This document shows, in pieces, positions 3,807 to 62,009 of a DNA stretch of 64,000 nucleotides (within the stretch, counting starts at the first letter, position 1; each line of letters opens with the position of its first letter). The notes below the pieces were generated by a model. It was not told the origin of the DNA, made no database searches, and saw only the letters and a list, made by a program, of their open reading frames with translations. A program made the position numbers and the translations under genes. The DNA is taken from the IMG/VR virus record IMGVR_UViG_3300050132_000038, positions 1 to 64,000 of that record, one strand, 5' to 3'.

Positions 3807-4565
3807 TTACGCAGTCGTGCCTTCTTCCACCTGGCGCCGAATTTCTTCTAAATAATCCGGAGCATAGCTGTACAACTTCGACCAGTACTCAATGGCCTGG
3901 GTCTGGTCCGCACGGCTAATGTTAGCCTTCACCATAGCACGACTAAACGATTTGGGGATTGGTACCTGCGAGATAACCGTCACCATATCATAATCAACAA
4001 CGGCAGCAGTTTGGGTAGTAGACGACACCACCTTAACTTGCTTATCGTTAGAAGCCACTACGAAACCGTGATCCATGTCACCCGACTTCGAGACAAACGA
4101 GACGAACTCACCTGAAGCAGCCTTAGCGATCTGAAGGCTACGCAATGCAGGAATGTCCGACCGGCGATGCACCGAAGCATTAACCAATTCCGACAGGTCC
4201 TCGTGACCATGACGTGCAAGGAACTTACCAGCCTTGCCCTCACGAATTTCCCACAGCGACTTGTCTGCATCATCCATCATAATGTTGGACGACATTACCT
4301 TATAGGATGCCCGCAACTCTTTATCAGAGACAACCCGCACTTCCTTGTTAGAACGAACGAACCCAACAGCTACACCAGCTTTGACGATACGGAAGCTATC
4401 TTCAACGGGAGCAGCCAGGTTGTTGAACTTATGTTGGAGAGCCGCACGAATGTCTTCCTTTGTCTGCTTACCAGTGAACGAGATCATCACCTTAGCCAGC
4501 GTCTCGCTCTTCATCCGGAAGTCGGTAATGCTTACAGTCTTTGCGTAGTCCATAATGCTGTTCAT
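3807..4565 (-). CDS. Putative virion structural protein
   Basis: 252-aa ORF with an AAGGA RBS, in the structural block; function not recognised. Confidence 0.6.
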   Translation of the reverse strand: MNSIMDYAKTVSITDFRMKSETLAKVMISFTGKQTKEDIRAALQHKFNNLAAPVEDSFRIVKAGVAVGFVRSNKEVRVVSDKELRASYKVMSSNIMMDDADKSLWEIREGKAGKFLARHGHEDLSELVNASVHRRSDIPALRSLQIAKAASGEFVSFVSKSGDMDHGFVVASNDKQVKVVSSTTQTAAVVDYDMVTVISQVPIPKSFSRAMVKANISRADQTQAIEYWSKLYSYAPDYLEEIRRQVEEGTTA

Positions 4566-22609: not shown

Positions 22610-22657
22610 GGGTGCTATCAGGTACGAGATGCATACCCCCTATTTACAGGAGTAGAA

Positions 22658-26455: not shown

Positions 26456-26510
26456 GACAGCCTCCTTTCTTTTTGAATCTCAATGGGGCTATATGCTATA
26501 TTTACAATAA

Positions 26511-33119: not shown

Positions 33120-33170
33120 CTAAATCTCCGTAAGGCTAAAAGTTGTTATGTTTCAACCACTATTTACAGT

Positions 33171-41560: not shown

Positions 41561-41599
41561 CTTTAATTCCTTGGTTGGGGTTACTTATGTTATTTACAG

Positions 41600-47388: not shown

Positions 47389-47438
47389 AGTTTATCCTTA
47401 ACTGACATTCCTAAATACTATTTACACGCCTAAAATGC

Positions 47439-47472
47439 AAAAGAGGATTCAGATTGTTAGTCTGAATCCTCT
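47439..47472 (-). terminator. Intrinsic terminator after NAMPT
   Basis: AGAGGATTCAGA / TCTGAATCCTCT stem followed by T-tract. Confidence 0.8.
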
Positions 47473-47479
47473 ATACTAC

Positions 47480-48880
47480 TTACAGGTTGCTGTTTGAACG
47501 TACTTGTGCGAACGTCATGTCACGGAACATCTGATCGCTACCTAAGGTATTCTTATACACAGGTTCCAGATAGTTGTGATAGGCTACCACACTAGCCTCG
47601 ACTGCAGAAGTCATGATACCCATGTCGTTTGCGTACACCATCTGCCTACCCTTCTTTGAAGCCTTGGCCCTAGAGGTAGCTGGATTCTTAGCAATGCCAG
47701 TCCAACCAGACAATCCATTGGTTACTGCAGATGCCTTGTGTGCATACCCGAGCGTATCACGATTGATACCTTGAAGGAGGGCGCCGCCCATGCCGAATGC
47801 GACGTTCTCGATCGAGAACTTGTTGAGTTCCAATGCCGTGCAAATTGCATTGATAGATGTACGATTCACACCATCGCCTTGAATCACCCGCACTGCTGGG
47901 TGCAACACTGAATAACCTTTACTGTTGGTCGTGTAACCATACGAATTTGCCAGGGAGCGAACAGTGTACATAACTTCCGATACGGGATCACCAGAGTCCG
48001 GACGAATCACAACACGGCCACCTTTCTCCAACACTCGGTCTTTCAGCTGCTTGCCCCAGATGTTGTCTACTGCGTTATGCAGGTCGTAAGCATCTGATAC
48101 GCACGCATAAATCTTGCCCTCACCACCAAAGTTTTCAATCATATTGGCGTAGGCATCAGCCTCGAACTCTTGACCCCAGGAGCAAACAGTGAAGTGCTCC
48201 ATCGCAGGGATTGAATAACCTGCTAATGGTTCCTCGTAGAATTGAGCTGCGGCTTCGATACCGCCCATCGTATCGCTGCCCATGAAGTTAACCAAGTGTG
48301 CCATTGCCCCTAGGCTTGCTGTCTCTTCTGACGATGCACCGCGAGCACCAAAGTCATGCAAGCGGAACCCCAACTCTGCCTTTGGACTATCGCAGGTCTT
48401 CTCTAGCCATTTGCGAAGATCTTGCTTGATGTGCCAGCTCAGGGTTGCCACAGTCGATGGATACCAGAGCGCACGCAGCAAGGAGGTTTCAACGAATTGC
48501 CCAATCCAAGGAATCGAAGGATCGGTGGACATTACCTGATACAGGGGGACACGGTTCGGGACGACCAAGCCTTCGGGCAGAGCTTGCAGGCTAATAGGAG
48601 GCAGCCCTTTGTGGATTTCGACAATTCGCATGAACTCAGCGTAGGGGAAGTACCCACTGTGGCGAAGTGCAGTAGCCTGGGCGTACTTAACTTGCTCCCT
48701 GGTCAACGGGTTACTTCGAATCTTCCGCAGCCATGCTTGAAGCCCAAACACCATGCTCTTCTTGAAGACTTCATCCGACCGTGCTTCTGCGTAGCTGCTA
48801 ACGTTACGCAAGGACTTAGGGAGCTGCAGGTAGTGGGAGTATTTATATGAATCGGTATCGAGTGCGAAATTATAGGTCAT
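47480..48880 (-). CDS. nadV: Nicotinamide phosphoribosyltransferase
   Basis: DTDSYKYSH, LHDFGARG, SIPAMEH, CVSDAYD, IRPDSGDP, IQGDG, FGMGGALLQ, SKKGR. Confidence 0.95.
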   Translation of the reverse strand: MTYNFALDTDSYKYSHYLQLPKSLRNVSSYAEARSDEVFKKSMVFGLQAWLRKIRSNPLTREQVKYAQATALRHSGYFPYAEFMRIVEIHKGLPPISLQALPEGLVVPNRVPLYQVMSTDPSIPWIGQFVETSLLRALWYPSTVATLSWHIKQDLRKWLEKTCDSPKAELGFRLHDFGARGASSEETASLGAMAHLVNFMGSDTMGGIEAAAQFYEEPLAGYSIPAMEHFTVCSWGQEFEADAYANMIENFGGEGKIYACVSDAYDLHNAVDNIWGKQLKDRVLEKGGRVVIRPDSGDPVSEVMYTVRSLANSYGYTTNSKGYSVLHPAVRVIQGDGVNRTSINAICTALELNKFSIENVAFGMGGALLQGINRDTLGYAHKASAVTNGLSGWTGIAKNPATSRAKASKKGRQMVYANDMGIMTSAVEASVVAYHNYLEPVYKNTLGSDQMFRDMTFAQVRSNSNL

Positions 48881-48881
48881 G

Positions 48882-48929
48882 GCAAATCTCCTTTGCTTTA
48901 AATGGATTCCTCGGACTCACTGCCCGAGG
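48882..48929 (-). promoter_or_regulatory. Tandem-hairpin 5' leader occluding the NAMPT RBS
   Basis: CCTCGGGC-AGTGA-GTCCGAGG, 12 nt, then GCAAA-GGAGA-TTTGC and ATG. Confidence 0.6.
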
Positions 48930-48951
48930 TTTGGTGCTACAGGATATATTG

Positions 48952-50052
48952 TTAGTCCACGGGTAGCATATTAATCATTTTGTGGATAATCCAGTAATGG
49001 TCACTATAGAGCTCCTGCGGGTTCAGCAACCCCAGAGGGAACCAACGAGCTTCCGCTGCGTCATCCCCTGCTTCTACTTCTGGCAATGTTGGGCGATCAT
49101 TTAACAGATACAGATACGCATGAGTGATAATGCGCCCTCGTTCGTCTGAACGATTCGGATCAGAGAACACATGCTTGAATCTGAAAGACAGATCAATGAT
49201 CTCCCGTGACAATCCAATCTTCGTCTCCTCTCGTGCTTCACGAGCTGAACTATCAGCCAGCTTCTCGAACTCGTTAGTGAATCCACCAGGGAGCGCCCAC
49301 AGCCCTTTACCTGGATTCATCCCTCGCTTGATAAGCAGTACGTGATTCGATTGAATGAACACGGAATCGGTAGTCGTGTGCGTCGCATTGTACGGCTTGC
49401 CCCTGCCGTCTTTGCCAACGTACTTGTGCTCTAGCTTATACTGTGCTGCGAAGTCCCGCGATTCAACTAACCCATTCACAATGTCTGCGTTGTTCTCAAG
49501 CCAGCTCTCAAGGTACGGAACAACAGGAGCGGGTACTTGCATCTTCCATCCCTTATGTCCGTCCAGCATATTATTGCGAATGTCCGTGGCGCTAAGGATA
49601 ACGCCATCCTCCTTGTAGGCACCCACGTCCACCGAACCCCACTGCGGAAACTTCTTCAAGTAGTACGAGGTATGATCCTTAGAGAAACCAACAAGGCCGA
49701 CCTTAACCTCAGCCTCCCTAACCCCACTCAGAGCTTCTACAGCGTTTACACCCTTGGCAACCTTACGCTGAGCTTCCATGCACCAGTGAAAATCGTTGTC
49801 GTGCATGTAATCGTTCAGGCTATCTACTAACAGCGAATCGTCAGTAAGTTCCTGCCTAAAGGTTTTAAGTAGCATCAGCGCAACCTCATCAGCCGTCCAT
49901 GGATTCTTTACCGTGCGAGGACGATTGGCTGAACCCACTAGAACCAGAACGTGACGAGCACGCTTCAATGCCTCGCGGATTACAAACTCATGCCCCCTGT
50001 GTAACGGGCGGAAGCGACCGATGAATACCAACAAATCATATTCGTATTGCAT
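48952..50052 (-). CDS. nadM: Bifunctional NMN adenylyltransferase / Nudix ADP-ribose pyrophosphatase (NadM-Nudix)
   Basis: FIGRFRPLHRGH, GSAN, KNPW, SATDIR, then Nudix box LPGG..AREAREETK and AGDDA. Start placed at ATG 50052 after the GGAGA RBS. Confidence 0.93.
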   Translation of the reverse strand: MQYEYDLLVFIGRFRPLHRGHEFVIREALKRARHVLVLVGSANRPRTVKNPWTADEVALMLLKTFRQELTDDSLLVDSLNDYMHDNDFHWCMEAQRKVAKGVNAVEALSGVREAEVKVGLVGFSKDHTSYYLKKFPQWGSVDVGAYKEDGVILSATDIRNNMLDGHKGWKMQVPAPVVPYLESWLENNADIVNGLVESRDFAAQYKLEHKYVGKDGRGKPYNATHTTTDSVFIQSNHVLLIKRGMNPGKGLWALPGGFTNEFEKLADSSAREAREETKIGLSREIIDLSFRFKHVFSDPNRSDERGRIITHAYLYLLNDRPTLPEVEAGDDAAEARWFPLGLLNPQELYSDHYWIIHKMINMLPVD

Positions 50053-50054
50053 TT

Positions 50055-50098
50055 GCAAATCTCCTTTGCGGATTTATACTAGAGGGCTCTCTGCCCTC
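50055..50098 (-). promoter_or_regulatory. Tandem-hairpin 5' leader occluding the NadM-Nudix RBS
   Basis: GAGGGC-AGAGA-GCCCTC, 12 nt, then GCAAA-GGAGA-TTTGC and ATG. Confidence 0.6.
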
Positions 50099-50104
50099 AT
50101 TTAC

Positions 50105-50112
50105 TATTTACA
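50105..50112 (-). promoter_or_regulatory. TGTAAATA promoter-like motif (one of ten copies found)
   Basis: Immediately upstream of the nadM leader; resembles the T4 late -10 box TATAAATA. Confidence 0.5.
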
Positions 50113-50113
50113 G

Positions 50114-50470
50114 TCAAACATCAAAGTTAAGCAACAGAGTAACGGGGTCGATGAACTCAACAGGCTTACCATGTTCCCTACAGAGTTTAATCTCTGCTTG
50201 AACTCCCGTCGAAGTCTCCCACCCGAACATTGTTAAAACAATCATACTGCCGCATTGCTTGAGTAACGTCTCCGAGTATGTTTTCCAATACGCCCAATCA
50301 CTAGGCAGCTCACCGTAGTTAAGTATGAAGTGCTTCAACAGTGGCGATACTGTGTAGATGCCCTTCTCCATCAACCGTGCATCACATCGACAGAGTGTGT
50401 GGATGCGATCTTCAAGGACCAATGGGTCGCTATCCGAGTAAGGTGCTGCTAGGTATATCAACTTTTCCAT
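50114..50470 (-). CDS. DUF1937 / nucleoside deoxyribosyltransferase-like protein
   Basis: IYLAAPYS, VSPL..H, W, GWETSTGVQAEI. Confidence 0.72.
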   Translation of the reverse strand: MEKLIYLAAPYSDSDPLVLEDRIHTLCRCDARLMEKGIYTVSPLLKHFILNYGELPSDWAYWKTYSETLLKQCGSMIVLTMFGWETSTGVQAEIKLCREHGKPVEFIDPVTLLLNFDV

Positions 50471-52576: not shown

Positions 52577-52776
52577 TTCACTCCGTACTTTGCCGCGAAA
52601 TTGGCAACGCGCCGCCAGAAGATGTGTTTGTAGGTCGGTGTATGTACGTCGTTCATAGCCACCCGTGCTACGCTATTAACTCGCCTACGCCGGGAGGGCC
52701 CTTTCAGCCGTTCTCGTTTTAAGGCCACGCGCTTGGAGCCAAGACTACCTCGCCGAAAATAAAATAGTGTCATCAT
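52573..52776 (-). CDS. Small Arg-rich protein
   Basis: ATGA-coupled on both sides; ends KYGVK like the ligase. Confidence 0.5.
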   Translation of the reverse strand: MMTLFYFRRGSLGSKRVALKRERLKGPSRRRRVNSVARVAMNDVHTPTYKHIFWRRVANFAAKYGVK

Positions 52777-54713
52777 TTCACTCCATACTTCTTACAAAAT
52801 TCGGTGAACGTCATCGCCTTGTCACCTGCCTTCTCAATCTTCGATGATTTACGACCTCCCTCACGGTATAGAAGCACCGTGGTCTTTGTGGAGAAGTCCG
52901 CAACAGTTCCGCCTAGTGCTTCAATCATAGATAACTGTGCTTGATCTCGATAGCCAGTGAACGTAGCAACGACACCAGCCAACTTACTATTGAGTACCTT
53001 CTTGGCTTTCTTTGGCTTGGGCAAGTCACCGTTGACTGTAAGATACTTCGTAACGTCGGCGAACCAACTCTTAAAGTTCTCGACCCCCTCTAGGATAAGA
53101 TTCACTGTATTATCGGCAAATCCTTTAGTTGCAAGGAGCTTGGTTTTTATCTCCTTGAATGATAACTCGGAACTGTAACCGCACAACTCATTCATCGAAA
53201 TGCCTACGGCTTCGACTGCGGAAAGACGACGCTCGCCTACACCAACATCGAAACACGAGGAAGCAACCATCAACTGCTTCAATGAGATTTCATTACACAG
53301 CACTCGCGTCAACTCAGTGAGAACCTTTTCTGATTGGTTTGGCCCGAGTCCTGCATTTTCTAATACTGCTATAGCAGTAGCGTCCTTGCCCTGCACAAGC
53401 TTAATGTAATCGTGCGGGTGCTTAAGACCTCCTTTTACATCATGTAACTTCCCAATCGTCTTGCGTGCGATGAATTCAATTCCTAGTGTCGTTAGGAAAC
53501 GATCAATGATCCGAACCCTTTGTTCTGGTGAGCTCTCAATCGCCATGAAGTTTACGCCGACTAACTTGTGAGGTACTTCCGGCAACTGAATCTTGCCCTT
53601 CTTCACGACACCCACGACCTTCGGTATCACTCCTCCGCTGCGAACGATTTTCAAGATAGCACCAGGTCCTATACCCCTATCAAGCATCCACTTCGCATTG
53701 TGTACCGTGCAGAACTTAACGAGTACGCCATCCATCTTCGTCGGCTCAATCTCAATCTTAGGCACTACTCGGCCAAAGCCTGACGTCTGATAAATCACGC
53801 GCTTAACTTTGCATTCTGCTGCGTTTGCTTCATCGTTGAACTTATATGCGATTAACTGCTTCGGCTTCTCCGCGTCCTCGTAATGCATCACCCAATCAGC
53901 AGGGGCAATCACCAGCCCATCCATCTCATACTCCGAGTCGTCGCGTATTTCAGCGAGTTCGTTCGCGTGATTGATGTCCGGTAATTCTGAGGAAGCAACT
54001 AGGTAATGCGTAACTACTTTGAATCCCCACTTCCTTGCCAACTTCAAGCCCTCAGGAAGGGTAGAACCGTAGACACCCAGGACCACCAGATCAACATCAA
54101 TTAAGGCCGGGTGCATATCCTTGCGATTGAACAATCCATTCACGAGGTTACGGCCGTTGTCTGCACCTGCATCACCCTTTGCCTCACGACTCCAGTTCTT
54201 CTCAAACACTTTCTTCTTCATCAACCCTTCGAGACGAAACACTGTTTGTTCCTTAGTAGAGATTGTCGCCGGGATCAACTTGAGCTTAGTCAAGTGCGGG
54301 ATGAAGAATGAAATGTCACCGCCGGTGATACCATCGCCACGCGTAATCAATCGGGATGCTTTGCCGTTCTCATAAATAAGTTGAAGCGATGTACCGTCTA
54401 GCTTATCAGACCAGACCCATTTCTTAACTGCTTTGTGCTTTGCGTAGAACTTGGGAACTGCCTCGTCGTACATTTTATTCAACGAGGGCATTGGTCTCCA
54501 CAGCAGTGTGTCGGTTTTCTTATCTGCGACCTTCACGCCGGTCTTCTTCAAGCGATCCCACTCAGGAGAAACTTTACGAATCGTATCTTCCAGCTTATCA
54601 AAAGCCTTATCACTCATAATCGGCTCGTTGCCGTTGTAGTACGCAGTCTGCGCTTTCACGTACAGCTTCTTCATTTCAGAAAGTGTCATTGGAGTCGGTG
54701 CCATTTTTTTCAA
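52773..54713 (-). CDS. ligA: NAD-dependent DNA ligase
   Basis: YYNG..MSD..FD, MPSL, KLDG, TRGDG..G.D, DGLVI, AYKF, TVHN, RSGGVIPK, C-terminal BRCT (FTG..GG..SSKIEKA). Confidence 0.93.
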   Translation of the reverse strand: MKKMAPTPMTLSEMKKLYVKAQTAYYNGNEPIMSDKAFDKLEDTIRKVSPEWDRLKKTGVKVADKKTDTLLWRPMPSLNKMYDEAVPKFYAKHKAVKKWVWSDKLDGTSLQLIYENGKASRLITRGDGITGGDISFFIPHLTKLKLIPATISTKEQTVFRLEGLMKKKVFEKNWSREAKGDAGADNGRNLVNGLFNRKDMHPALIDVDLVVLGVYGSTLPEGLKLARKWGFKVVTHYLVASSELPDINHANELAEIRDDSEYEMDGLVIAPADWVMHYEDAEKPKQLIAYKFNDEANAAECKVKRVIYQTSGFGRVVPKIEIEPTKMDGVLVKFCTVHNAKWMLDRGIGPGAILKIVRSGGVIPKVVGVVKKGKIQLPEVPHKLVGVNFMAIESSPEQRVRIIDRFLTTLGIEFIARKTIGKLHDVKGGLKHPHDYIKLVQGKDATAIAVLENAGLGPNQSEKVLTELTRVLCNEISLKQLMVASSCFDVGVGERRLSAVEAVGISMNELCGYSSELSFKEIKTKLLATKGFADNTVNLILEGVENFKSWFADVTKYLTVNGDLPKPKKAKKVLNSKLAGVVATFTGYRDQAQLSMIEALGGTVADFSTKTTVLLYREGGRKSSKIEKAGDKAMTFTEFCKKYGVK

Positions 54714-61952: not shown

Positions 61953-62009
61953 AGTTGCTAGTCCTAGAAGAGGAAAGGGATAGTCAGGATTGACTACCCT
62001 CTATTTACA

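Follow-up and report, generated by a model that had tools for sequence, protein, structure and literature searches.

The window analysed here, a 64,000-nucleotide stretch corresponding to positions 1 to 64,000 of the IMG/VR virus record IMGVR_UViG_3300050132_000038, is part of a jumbo phage genome of 218,861 bp and contains two adjacent NAD-salvage genes, NadM-Nudix and NadV/NAMPT, both on the minus strand. [quoted passage not shown] Read in the direction of transcription, the features are the following:

50105-50112, minus strand: promoter-like motif TGTAAATA, ending 6 nt before hairpin 1 of the nadM leader.
50082-50098, minus strand: hairpin 1 of the nadM leader, GAGGGC-AGAGA-GCCCTC.
50070-50081, minus strand: 12-nt linker TAGTATAAATCC, containing one G.
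50055-50069, minus strand: SD hairpin of the nadM leader, GCAAA-GGAGA-TTTGC, followed by AA and then the ATG at 50052.
48952-50052, minus strand: NadM-Nudix gene (NMN adenylyltransferase fused to a Nudix domain), 366 aa.
48909-48929, minus strand: hairpin 1 of the nadV leader, CCTCGGGC-AGTGA-GTCCGAGG, with one G-U pair, located between the two genes 22 nt after the nadM stop codon.
48897-48908, minus strand: 12-nt linker AATCCATTTAAA, containing no G.
48882-48896, minus strand: SD hairpin of the nadV leader, the same 15-mer GCAAA-GGAGA-TTTGC, followed by C and then the ATG at 48880.
47480-48880, minus strand: NadV/NAMPT gene (nicotinamide phosphoribosyltransferase), 466 aa.
47442-47472, minus strand: terminator-like hairpin followed by a T-run directly after the nadV stop codon, the likely 3' end of the nadM-nadV transcription unit.

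Gene identities rest on Pfam matches (CTP_transf_like and NUDIX for NadM-Nudix; NAMPT_N and NAPRTase for NadV). NadM-Nudix is 53% identical to the bifunctional NMN adenylyltransferase of phiRSL1. A megablast search of GenBank phages returned no near relative, and relatives were reached only by distant blastn and tblastn.

Structure and uniqueness of the two leaders

The leaders had been noticed in an earlier note made from the sequence alone, and the observation made there is correct. We first asked whether the arrangement could have arisen by chance. The 15-mer of the SD hairpin occurs exactly twice in the window, with no other site within 3 mismatches. Predicted folding energies for hairpin 1 are -11.5 kcal/mol (z-score -3.1) for nadM and -14.4 kcal/mol (z-score -4.2) for nadV, while the SD hairpins are weak, at -4.3 and -3.8 kcal/mol, respectively. 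In the whole genome, SD-in-loop hairpins with a perfect stem of 5 bp or more in front of an ORF are rare, and these two stand out. Covariance models of the full architecture hit only these two sites up to E=10, confirming the note's remark that no other gene has it. A general survey of hairpin loops in the genome showed no over-represented loop sequence; hairpin 1 is therefore not a genome-wide repeat.

The motif TGTAAATA occurs 45 times in the genome against about 8 expected, always points the same way as the genes, and is intergenic in 28 of 45 copies although only 11.7% of the genome is intergenic. In related phages, sigma-70-like TTGACA-17-TATAAT promoters end 2-9 nt before hairpin 1. We infer from sequence alone that hairpin 1 of the nadM leader lies at or very near the 5' end of the transcript.

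Distribution, covariation and gene context of the motif

We next asked whether the architecture exists elsewhere. With different stem sequences, it precedes nadM and nadV in phages of alpha-, beta- and gamma-proteobacteria (phiRSL1, BcepSauron, DSS3P8, RcXuper, LucasX and RTH11) and in most of 80 IMG/VR loci examined. Across the family the stems vary freely while the loops are conserved: loop 1 is AUAGA in 76 of 88 members, usually closed by a G-C pair (G-AUAGA-C), and loop 2 is GGAGU or GGAGA. In the wider alignment the G at position 4 of loop 1 is invariant and the A at position 5 exceeds 90%. The pattern RGWGA proposed in the note for the loops describes only this phage lineage. The window variants do occur in other loci of the family (L numbers are our labels for loci), AGAGA in L013, L106, L142 and L143 and AGUGA in L068, and the C-G closing pair seen here is shared with L013, L015 and L019. 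Loops AAAGA and GUAGA are also found. The exact identity of the 15-mer and the exact 12-nt spacing, both reported in the note, are features of this phage only: family linkers are 6-16 nt long (median 10), narrowly distributed and mostly 8-12 nt, contain only 4.9% G against 21.6% in the stems and are not conserved in sequence, and the sequence of stem 2 is free.

The absence of conservation and covariation in homologous leaders had been named beforehand as grounds for rejecting a shared regulatory RNA; instead, homologous leaders are conserved and covary strongly. In a MAFFT alignment (A2), 94.3% of cells pair, against 52.7% after shuffling (0 of 500 shuffles reach the observed value) and 33-45% when the partners are slid, and all 13 pairs, including every pair of the SD helix, show changes on both sides. 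The rows of A2 were pre-selected by our own hairpin finder, which inflates the pairing percentage somewhat, a bias not shared by the gene-blind and whole-genome scans described below. An 89-sequence alignment (A4) gave 95.9% against 53.6%, and RNAalifold recovered both helices on its own. No conserved anti-SD or other alternative pairing was found.

To determine which genes carry the motif, covariance models were run over 16 whole phage records (about 4.2 Mb), yielding 34 hits at E<=0.1. All of those examined lie directly 5' of nadM, nadV, pnuC (PF04973, 1.9e-37), nadA (PF02445, 2.1e-84) or small or unknown ORFs inside NAD clusters. Homologues of pnuC and nadA in other phages carry it too. A pattern scan of IMG/VR that took no account of gene identity gave 59 matches, 53 of them directly 5' of nadM or nadV. 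SD hairpins of 5 bp or more are present at 84% of 108 NAD-gene starts, against 21% of 319 other SD-bearing ORF starts in the same loci. Model R1 scores the nadM and nadV leaders of the window at 38.9 and 24.4 bits, respectively (hairpin 1 of nadM occupying positions 1-19 of the hits with both models). Model R2, built from 89 leaders of other phages without this genome or its nearest relative, scores them at 36.5 bits (E=4.8e-5) and 26.6 bits (E=5.7e-3), with no other hit up to E=10 in 218,861 bp. Thus, in model score, loop 1 (A-N-N-G-A), linker, SD hairpin (required to end 0-5 nt before the start codon, and ending 2 and 1 nt before the ATG here) and downstream gene, both leaders behave as members of the family.

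The limits of the family were also examined. phiRSL1 and BcepSauron have the architecture by eye, with AAGA or TAGA tetraloops and a U-run, but are not detected by R2. More distant NadM-bearing phages (T4-like Klebsiella and Escherichia phages, a KVP40-like phage, Aeromonas phage 31, and Caulobacter, Brevundimonas and Rhizobium phages) lack hairpin 1 and are not hit by the models, although several keep an SD hairpin. In bacterial genome contigs, the pattern GGGATAGACCC-N(6-20)-AAAGGAGTTTT, which represents only one subclass of the motif, gave two matches, one inside a coding region and the other at a site where a nadV/nadM tblastn found nothing; we take both as chance, and no bacterial copy of this subclass was found. 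Searches with all Rfam 15 models gave no match to the leaders, either in the window (gathering threshold, and E<=10 on 48800-50200) or on 20 canonical relatives, apart from two chance sRNA matches inside the nadM coding region. We found no paper describing the motif.

Level of action and candidate effectors

All 119 hits lie on the coding strand, and G-U and U-G pairs make up about half of the non-Watson-Crick cells, pointing to RNA, not DNA. This makes a DNA operator for a dimeric transcription factor of the NrtR, NadR or NiaR type very unlikely, even though the identical 15-bp palindrome at both genes could be read as one: an operator would conserve the half-site sequence, whereas here only the pairing of the stems is conserved and it is the loops, not the arms, that are constant. 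An intrinsic terminator or attenuator at hairpin 1 is equally disfavoured. Hairpin 1 is followed by TTTT in phiRSL1 and BcepSauron, and a simple terminator scan flags 50082-50098, but on the plus strand; the window hairpins are followed by UAGUAUAA and AAUCCAUU, neither a U-run, and only 9 of 88 family members have UUUU within 8 nt.

The note's interpretation, a cis-regulatory RNA for coordinated translational control of NAD salvage bound by a dimeric protein (CsrA/RsmA-like, or NadM-Nudix itself) or by a metabolite, is partly supported. What the analysis establishes is the architecture, its strand specificity, its covariation with tolerance of G-U pairs, and its specificity to NAD genes. That the element acts on the mRNA at translation initiation, which we consider most likely, is an inference drawn from the SD lying in loop 2 and from the hairpin ending 0-2 nt before the start codon; binding of any protein or metabolite is likewise inferred, as is the existence of one shared trans-acting effector that would recognise the hairpin-1 loop together with the neighbouring SD hairpin, so that nadM and nadV (and elsewhere pnuC and nadA) would be expressed in step.

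Of the binders proposed in the note, a CsrA/RsmA-like protein bridging two GGA-containing loops is very unlikely. Loop 2 with its closing A, A-GGAG, resembles the A(N)GGA-in-a-loop site of CsrA, two hairpins about 10 nt apart would suit a dimer, and a few members do have GGA in loop 1 (GUGGA in L023, L025 and L043; GGAGA in L083). However, the GGA that defines CsrA sites is missing from loop 1 in nearly all members, including both leaders here. Moreover, motif-bearing phages infect Ruegeria and Rhodobacter, alpha-proteobacteria generally lack CsrA, and CsrA control would not be limited to NAD genes.

We tentatively favour, at less than even confidence, another RNA-binding protein, one that would contact two similar purine-rich pentaloops about 10 nt apart, clamp the weak SD hairpin and block the 30S subunit. 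The simplest candidates would be the oligomeric enzymes that always co-occur with the motif, NadV or NadM-Nudix, acting as autoregulators. In promoter-proximal copies such as nadM here, hairpin 1 would also be the 5'-terminal stem-loop of the mRNA. In favour of a protein over a ligand, only about 7 nt are conserved outside the SD, the hairpins are simple with no internal loops, the two pentaloops resemble each other (xxAGA), and linker length is narrowly distributed. Non-consensus loop-1 variants tend to be shared by the leaders of one genome (4 of 27 pairs against 1.4 expected, a value reached in 75 of 5000 shuffles), but this is only suggestive, and one genome (G003) carries both AUAGA and AGAGA loops, which weakens the argument that the loop co-evolves with a genome-specific protein. 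There is also a reason to regulate: NARP2, the phage NAD+ reconstitution pathway formed by these two enzymes, consumes PRPP and over-produces NAD+ even without a defence system (preprint 10.1101/2024.02.11.579819). Against this view, the SD hairpin alone is weak (about -4 kcal/mol) and could simply present the SD rather than hide it, no conserved regulator gene lies within +/-2.5 kb of the clusters (clustering of all ORFs in 87 loci found no family beyond nadM and nadV in more than 8 loci), and the occurrence of the motif in phages of very different hosts argues against a host-specific protein and fits a metabolite equally well.

A metabolite-sensing riboswitch is possible but more doubtful. 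An NAD-related molecule (NAD+, NMN, nicotinamide or ADP-ribose) would bind the loops and promote or break docking between them, hiding or exposing the SD, as guanidinium does for the two hairpins of the guanidine-II riboswitch. The regulon consists of non-homologous genes of one pathway, as is typical of riboswitches; the motif is found in phages of three proteobacterial classes and in many uncultivated phages without a conserved neighbouring regulator gene; and two small hairpins with conserved loops, a variable linker held to 8-12 nt and the second hairpin at the SD follow the guanidine-II plan (PMC5558903). That motif was itself first judged "suggestive of protein binding" because of its simple repeated hairpins (PMC2864571). 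On the other hand, the G-AUAGA-C core, the only part conserved outside the SD, tolerates several variants, including AAGA tetraloops in phiRSL1 and BcepSauron, whereas ligand-binding cores are usually nearly invariant; there are no internal loops or junctions; the two loops show no Watson-Crick complementarity; loop 1 does not covary with the fifth base of loop 2; and no Rfam riboswitch model matches. In the most far-reaching version of this reading, doubtful but not excluded, the motif would be a new class of virus-borne riboswitch responding to NAD+ or NMN as a co-repressor or to nicotinamide, the product of NAD-cleaving defence systems, as an inducer, so that the phage would switch on its NAD-rebuilding counter-defence pathway only once host immunity has started to destroy NAD+.

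A constitutive element with no sensing is unlikely. Hairpin 1 would then be a 5'-terminal or post-processing stabiliser protecting the mRNA from 5'-end-dependent decay, hairpin 2 would simply present the SD for efficient early translation, and the unit would travel with NAD genes as a mobile expression cassette. Hairpin 1 does start at about +1 of the inferred transcript and is stable, the SD hairpin is too weak to block a ribosome on its own, the distance from SD to ATG is optimal, and phages that lack hairpin 1 (BUDD, DLP_6, Lw1 and a KVP40-like phage) still keep an SD hairpin. But this reading does not explain why the loop-1 sequence is conserved while the stems drift freely, nor why, among hundreds of genes per genome including others with the same promoter type, only NAD genes carry the element. 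In addition, many nadV copies lie between genes with no promoter of their own, and the element precedes unlinked NAD genes (nadA about 300 kb from nadM in genome G005, nadV about 35 kb away in genome G007).

Related RNA elements and meaning for phage NAD metabolism

The resemblance to the guanidine-II riboswitch (mini-ykkC motif) is one of design, not membership. Guanidine-II likewise has freely varying stems, conserved terminal loops and closing pairs, and acts purely on translation (PMC5558903), but its loops are identical ACGR tetraloops on C-G-closed stems that pair with each other, and it serves guanidine detoxification in bacteria. Here the loops are pentaloops that differ from each other and are not complementary, the SD lies inside loop 2, and the context is NAD metabolism in phages. 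The NAD+ riboswitches of class I (nadA motif, a tandem arrangement) and class II (pnuC motif, involving the SD) are also leader RNAs of NAD biosynthesis or transport genes, including nadA and pnuC, but have internal bulges or a pseudoknot and occur in Acidobacteria and Streptococcus, and their Rfam models match neither the window nor the 20 relatives. The pan motif and similar candidates consist of simple repeated hairpins upstream of genes of one vitamin or cofactor pathway and were read as sites for a dimeric protein (PMC2864571); in the pan motif, however, the conserved feature is bulged A residues in the stem, the genes are those of pantothenate, and the setting is bacterial. In the coat protein-replicase hairpins of the RNA phages MS2 and PP7 and in lambda N-boxB, the loop and not the stem sequence is read by a small protein, and in MS2 and PP7 a dimer binds at the ribosome-binding site and represses translation. 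Judged from sequence alone, the PP7 loop consensus R-U-A-K-G-R resembles AUAG-A. Those elements are single hairpins with a bulged purine in ssRNA phages, or an antitermination site in lambda, and no homologous protein is known in these dsDNA phages. CsrA/RsmA-regulated leaders also display the SD GGA in a hairpin loop with a second hairpin a short distance upstream, but differ in the loop-1 GGA and in regulon, and some hosts of the phages studied here probably lack CsrA.

Reconstitution of NAD+ by NadV plus NadM is a recently recognised way for phages to defeat NAD-depleting defences such as Thoeris, DSR and SIR2-type systems, and is costly because it drains PRPP. We found nothing describing how phages control it. 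The element, about 50 nt long and located almost only in front of NAD-making genes, probably controls this anti-defence pathway, and its sharing by nadM, nadV, pnuC and nadA across many phage lineages gives a concrete handle on that control. It also marks unknown genes that carry the same leader, including the families phrog_33851 and phrog_1843 and several small ORFs, as probable members of phage NAD metabolism. If the element senses a metabolite, it would be a rare case of a virus-borne riboswitch class that regulates an anti-defence pathway; if it binds a protein, it defines a new RNA operator and implies a regulator still to be identified.

Two leaders of shared architecture and their relatives in other phages

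The phage genome is a single contig of 218,861 bp with direct terminal repeats and 48% GC, of which the window represents the first 64 kb. Genes in the region of interest run on the minus strand, as do both leaders, which are as described in the earlier note; the observation made there is therefore correct. The features are:

50114-50470 (-), gene directly upstream of nadM, nucleoside-2-deoxyribosyltransferase-like (DUF1937)
52773-54713 (-), NAD-dependent DNA ligase gene, further upstream
50105-50112 (-), copy of the octamer TGTAAATA, probable promoter element
50098-50082 (-), hairpin 1 of the nadM leader, GAGGGC-AGAGA-GCCCTC, followed by a 12-nt linker
50069-50055 (-), Shine-Dalgarno (SD) hairpin of the nadM leader, GCAAA-GGAGA-TTTGC, followed by AA and ATG
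48952-50052 (-), NadM-type NMN adenylyltransferase fused to a Nudix domain
48929-48909 (-), hairpin 1 of the nadV leader, CCTCGGGC-AGTGA-GTCCGAGG, followed by a 12-nt linker
48896-48882 (-), SD hairpin of the nadV leader, the same 15-mer, followed by C and ATG
47480-48880 (-), NadV/NAMPT nicotinamide phosphoribosyltransferase
47442-47472 (-), terminator-like hairpin following nadV

The 15-mer occurs only twice in the window, with no near-matches. Hairpin 1 is stable (predicted energies of -11.5 and -14.4 kcal/mol for nadM and nadV, respectively), while the SD hairpin is weak (-4.3 and -3.8 kcal/mol). The DUF1937 and DNA ligase genes are both linked to NAD or nucleotide metabolism, but neither carries the leader motif. 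A few other genes of this phage (window 6081 (-) and 44599 (-); genome 142009 (-)) have a short SD-in-loop hairpin, such as TAACT-AGG-AGTTA and GATTA-AGGAA-TAATC, but they have no hairpin 1 and are not scored by the covariance models described below.

We next asked whether this architecture is conserved. The nearest named relatives are Ralstonia phage phiRSL1 and Burkholderia phages BcepSauron and BcepSaruman, at about 67% nucleotide identity over the two genes. Their nadM and nadV leaders have the same plan with different sequences: hairpin 1 carries an AAGA or TAGA loop, and the SD hairpins are GCAAC-AGGA-GTTGC (BcepSauron, both genes) and TTTCC-AGAGA-GGAAA or TATCC-AGAGA-GGATA (phiRSL1). 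In phiRSL1 and BcepSauron (collected loci L001:4330-4360 (-) and L002:4265-4290 (-)), hairpin 1 has an AAGA tetraloop and is followed by TTTT, and there it looks like an intrinsic terminator or attenuator, unlike in the window and most of the family. Phages of Ruegeria (DSS3P8), Rhodobacter (RcXuper) and Xanthomonas (LucasX, RTH11) show the architecture too, now with a G-ATAGA-C core in hairpin 1. A profile scan of IMG/VR with a NadM-Nudix alignment returned 80 loci, and in most of them both genes carry the element.

The family consensus was derived from the 88 distinct sequences of the model alignment A4. Hairpin 1 has a free stem, a loop that is ATAGA in 76 of 88 and a closing pair that is G-C in 76 of 88; in the wider 115-sequence alignment A3, the G at loop position 4 is present in all 109 rows that have a base there. 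The linker is 6-16 nt (median 10) and contains only 4.9% G. Hairpin 2 also has a free stem, with a loop that is GGAGT (51), GGAGA (11) or a near variant, and a closing pair that is A-T in 79 of 88. The AGAGA and AGTGA loops of the window, with C-G closure, are minority variants, which recur in loci L013, L015, L019, L068, L106, L142 and L143. More distant nadM and nadV genes (loci L113:2920-3003, L116:2910-2991, L111:2920-3003 and 4000-4085, and L114:2910-2991), examples being those of Escherichia phage Lw1, a KVP40-like Vibrio phage, Pseudomonas phage Astolliot and Salmonella phage PHA46, keep an SD-in-loop hairpin but have no AUAGA hairpin 1, a typical case being AACGTG-GAG-CACGTT followed by ATG. 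The SD hairpin may be the older part of the element.

An RNA structure found in front of NAD genes

To test whether the pairing is maintained, we used a plain MAFFT alignment of 59 distinct leaders. In this alignment, 94.3% of cells form standard pairs, against 52.7% after shuffling (0 of 500 shuffles reach this) and 33-45% when partners are slid by 1-3 columns, and all 13 pairs show changes on both sides. The 89-sequence model alignment gives 95.9% against 53.6%. It should be noted that the 59 rows were chosen by our own hairpin finder and that model alignments lean towards the model; the specificity tests presented next do not depend on that choice. RNAalifold recovers both helices without being told. 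G-U and U-G pairs are common among the non-Watson-Crick cells, all 119 model hits lie on the coding strand, and the conserved parts are the loops, not the arms. These three points fit an RNA element and not a DNA operator. Only 9 of 88 copies of hairpin 1 are followed by a U-run, so it is not a terminator.

Two covariance models, R1 and R2, were then run over 16 whole phage records totalling about 4.2 Mb. In the genome studied here, exactly two hits were obtained up to E=10, the two leaders. DSS3P8, LucasX and five IMG/VR genomes (G001, G007, G008, G009 and G011) have two hits each. Of the other scanned genomes, G004 has one hit, at nadV; G002 has four, all in its NAD cluster (nadM, nadV and two small ORFs); G003 has nadM, nadV, a 50-aa ORF and PnuC (PF04973, 1.9e-37); G005 has nadM, nadV and, about 300 kb away, NadA quinolinate synthase (PF02445, 2.1e-84); G012 has nadV and two small ORFs; G013 has nadM, nadV and a 215-aa ORF; and G006 and G010 have no hit at E<=0.1. 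Close homologues of that PnuC and that NadA in other viral contigs also start with the motif. R2 was built from 89 leaders, none of them from this genome or from its closest relative L013, and it finds the nadM leader (36.5 bits, E=4.8e-5) and the nadV leader (26.6 bits, E=5.7e-3) and nothing else in the genome.

A gene-blind scan of IMG/VR with two sequence patterns that encode only the loop cores gave 59 matches, of which 53 are directly 5' of nadM or nadV. Two of the remaining six precede members of the same unknown families seen in the NAD clusters. Two protein families of unknown function, phrog_33851 (about 120 aa, motif GEDPNCD...HYQP..G.FEG) and phrog_1843 (about 215 aa), carry the same NAD-type leader in several phages (L099:2110-2463 (-), L213:3534-3911 (-), L053:5975 onward; L033:1823-2470 (+), L161 (cut)), and are candidate new members of phage NAD metabolism or its regulation. 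Further small ORFs inside NAD clusters (50-116 aa, with no Pfam hit; L046:1797-2096 and 2154-2504, L099:1566-1811, L106:1548-1700) each have their own copy of the leader. SD-in-loop hairpins of 5 bp or more occur at 84% of NAD-gene starts, against 21% of other SD-bearing ORF starts in the same loci. SD hairpins are occasionally used outside the NAD genes: an unrelated gene in one IMG/VR phage (L042:1790-1826 (+)) has a long SD hairpin (TATCGTTC-AAAGGA-GAACGATA) directly after a TATAAT box. A pattern scan of 185,579 bacterial and archaeal genomes for one common subclass of the motif found only two matches, both apparently due to chance.

Inferred position on the transcript and possible modes of action

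In this genome, the octamer TGTAAATA occurs 45 times against about 8 expected. It always points the same way as the genes, i.e. on the minus strand below about 115 kb, where gene orientation flips, and on the plus strand above. Most copies are intergenic, usually 19-60 nt before a start codon. Copies in the window include 22641-22648, 26499-26506, 33161-33168, 41591-41598, 47419-47426, 50105-50112 and 62002-62009 (all minus strand). The octamer is probably a phage promoter element resembling the T4 late TATAAATA, and one copy ends 6 nt before hairpin 1 of nadM. In IMG/VR relatives, sigma-70-like TTGACA-17-TATAAT promoters, or TATAAATA, end 2-9 nt before hairpin 1. Promoter-proximal copies therefore probably form the very 5' end of the mRNA, although this is inferred from sequence alone. 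Copies in front of nadV usually lie between genes without a promoter, as is the case here, so a 5'-end position is not essential to the element.

What the analysis establishes is a conserved bipartite RNA structure with the SD in loop 2, ending next to the start codon and restricted to genes of one pathway. From this, we infer that it acts at translation initiation and gives all NAD genes of a phage a common control point. The interpretation proposed in the earlier note, that of a cis-regulatory RNA coordinating translation of the NAD salvage genes and bound by a dimeric protein (CsrA/RsmA-like or NadM-Nudix itself) or by a metabolite, is supported in part. For the effector, we tentatively favour an RNA-binding protein, without holding it more likely than not: the hairpins are plain, only about 7 nt outside the SD are conserved, the two pentaloops are alike (xxAGA), the spacing is narrow, and non-consensus loops tend to be shared within a genome. 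No regulator gene is conserved next to the clusters, so the simplest candidates would be the always-present oligomeric enzymes NadV or NadM-Nudix, or else a widely conserved host factor. A metabolite sensor built like the guanidine-II riboswitch is somewhat less likely. The regulon logic, the breadth of hosts and the two-hairpin plan all fit, and the guanidine-II motif was itself once thought to bind a protein; against this, the loop tolerates variants, and the loops show neither a ligand pocket nor complementarity. Less likely still is a constitutive stabiliser combined with an SD presenter, which explains the 5' position and the weak SD hairpin, but neither the conserved loop nor the restriction to NAD genes. 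CsrA, a DNA operator and a terminator each fail a defining test.

Relation to known leaders and significance

Rfam 15 has no family that matches the window or 20 canonical relatives. Full-text literature searches found no paper that links a riboswitch, hairpin or leader to phage nadV or nadM, although these searches did not extend to most subscription journals and a prior description cannot be excluded. Neither the survey of viral NAD systems (PMC9503650) nor the preprint on NARP2, the NAD+ reconstitution pathway formed by these two enzymes (10.1101/2024.02.11.579819), mentions one. We regard the element as a new family among the tandem-hairpin translational leaders, themselves already known, its closest relative in design being guanidine-II and its closest functional relatives being the NAD+-I and NAD+-II riboswitches.

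The NadV and NadM pathway lets phages rebuild NAD+ against NAD-depleting immunity, at a metabolic cost. A shared 50-nt control element, the control itself being inferred, makes the regulation of this pathway directly testable, and also points to new candidate NAD-related genes.
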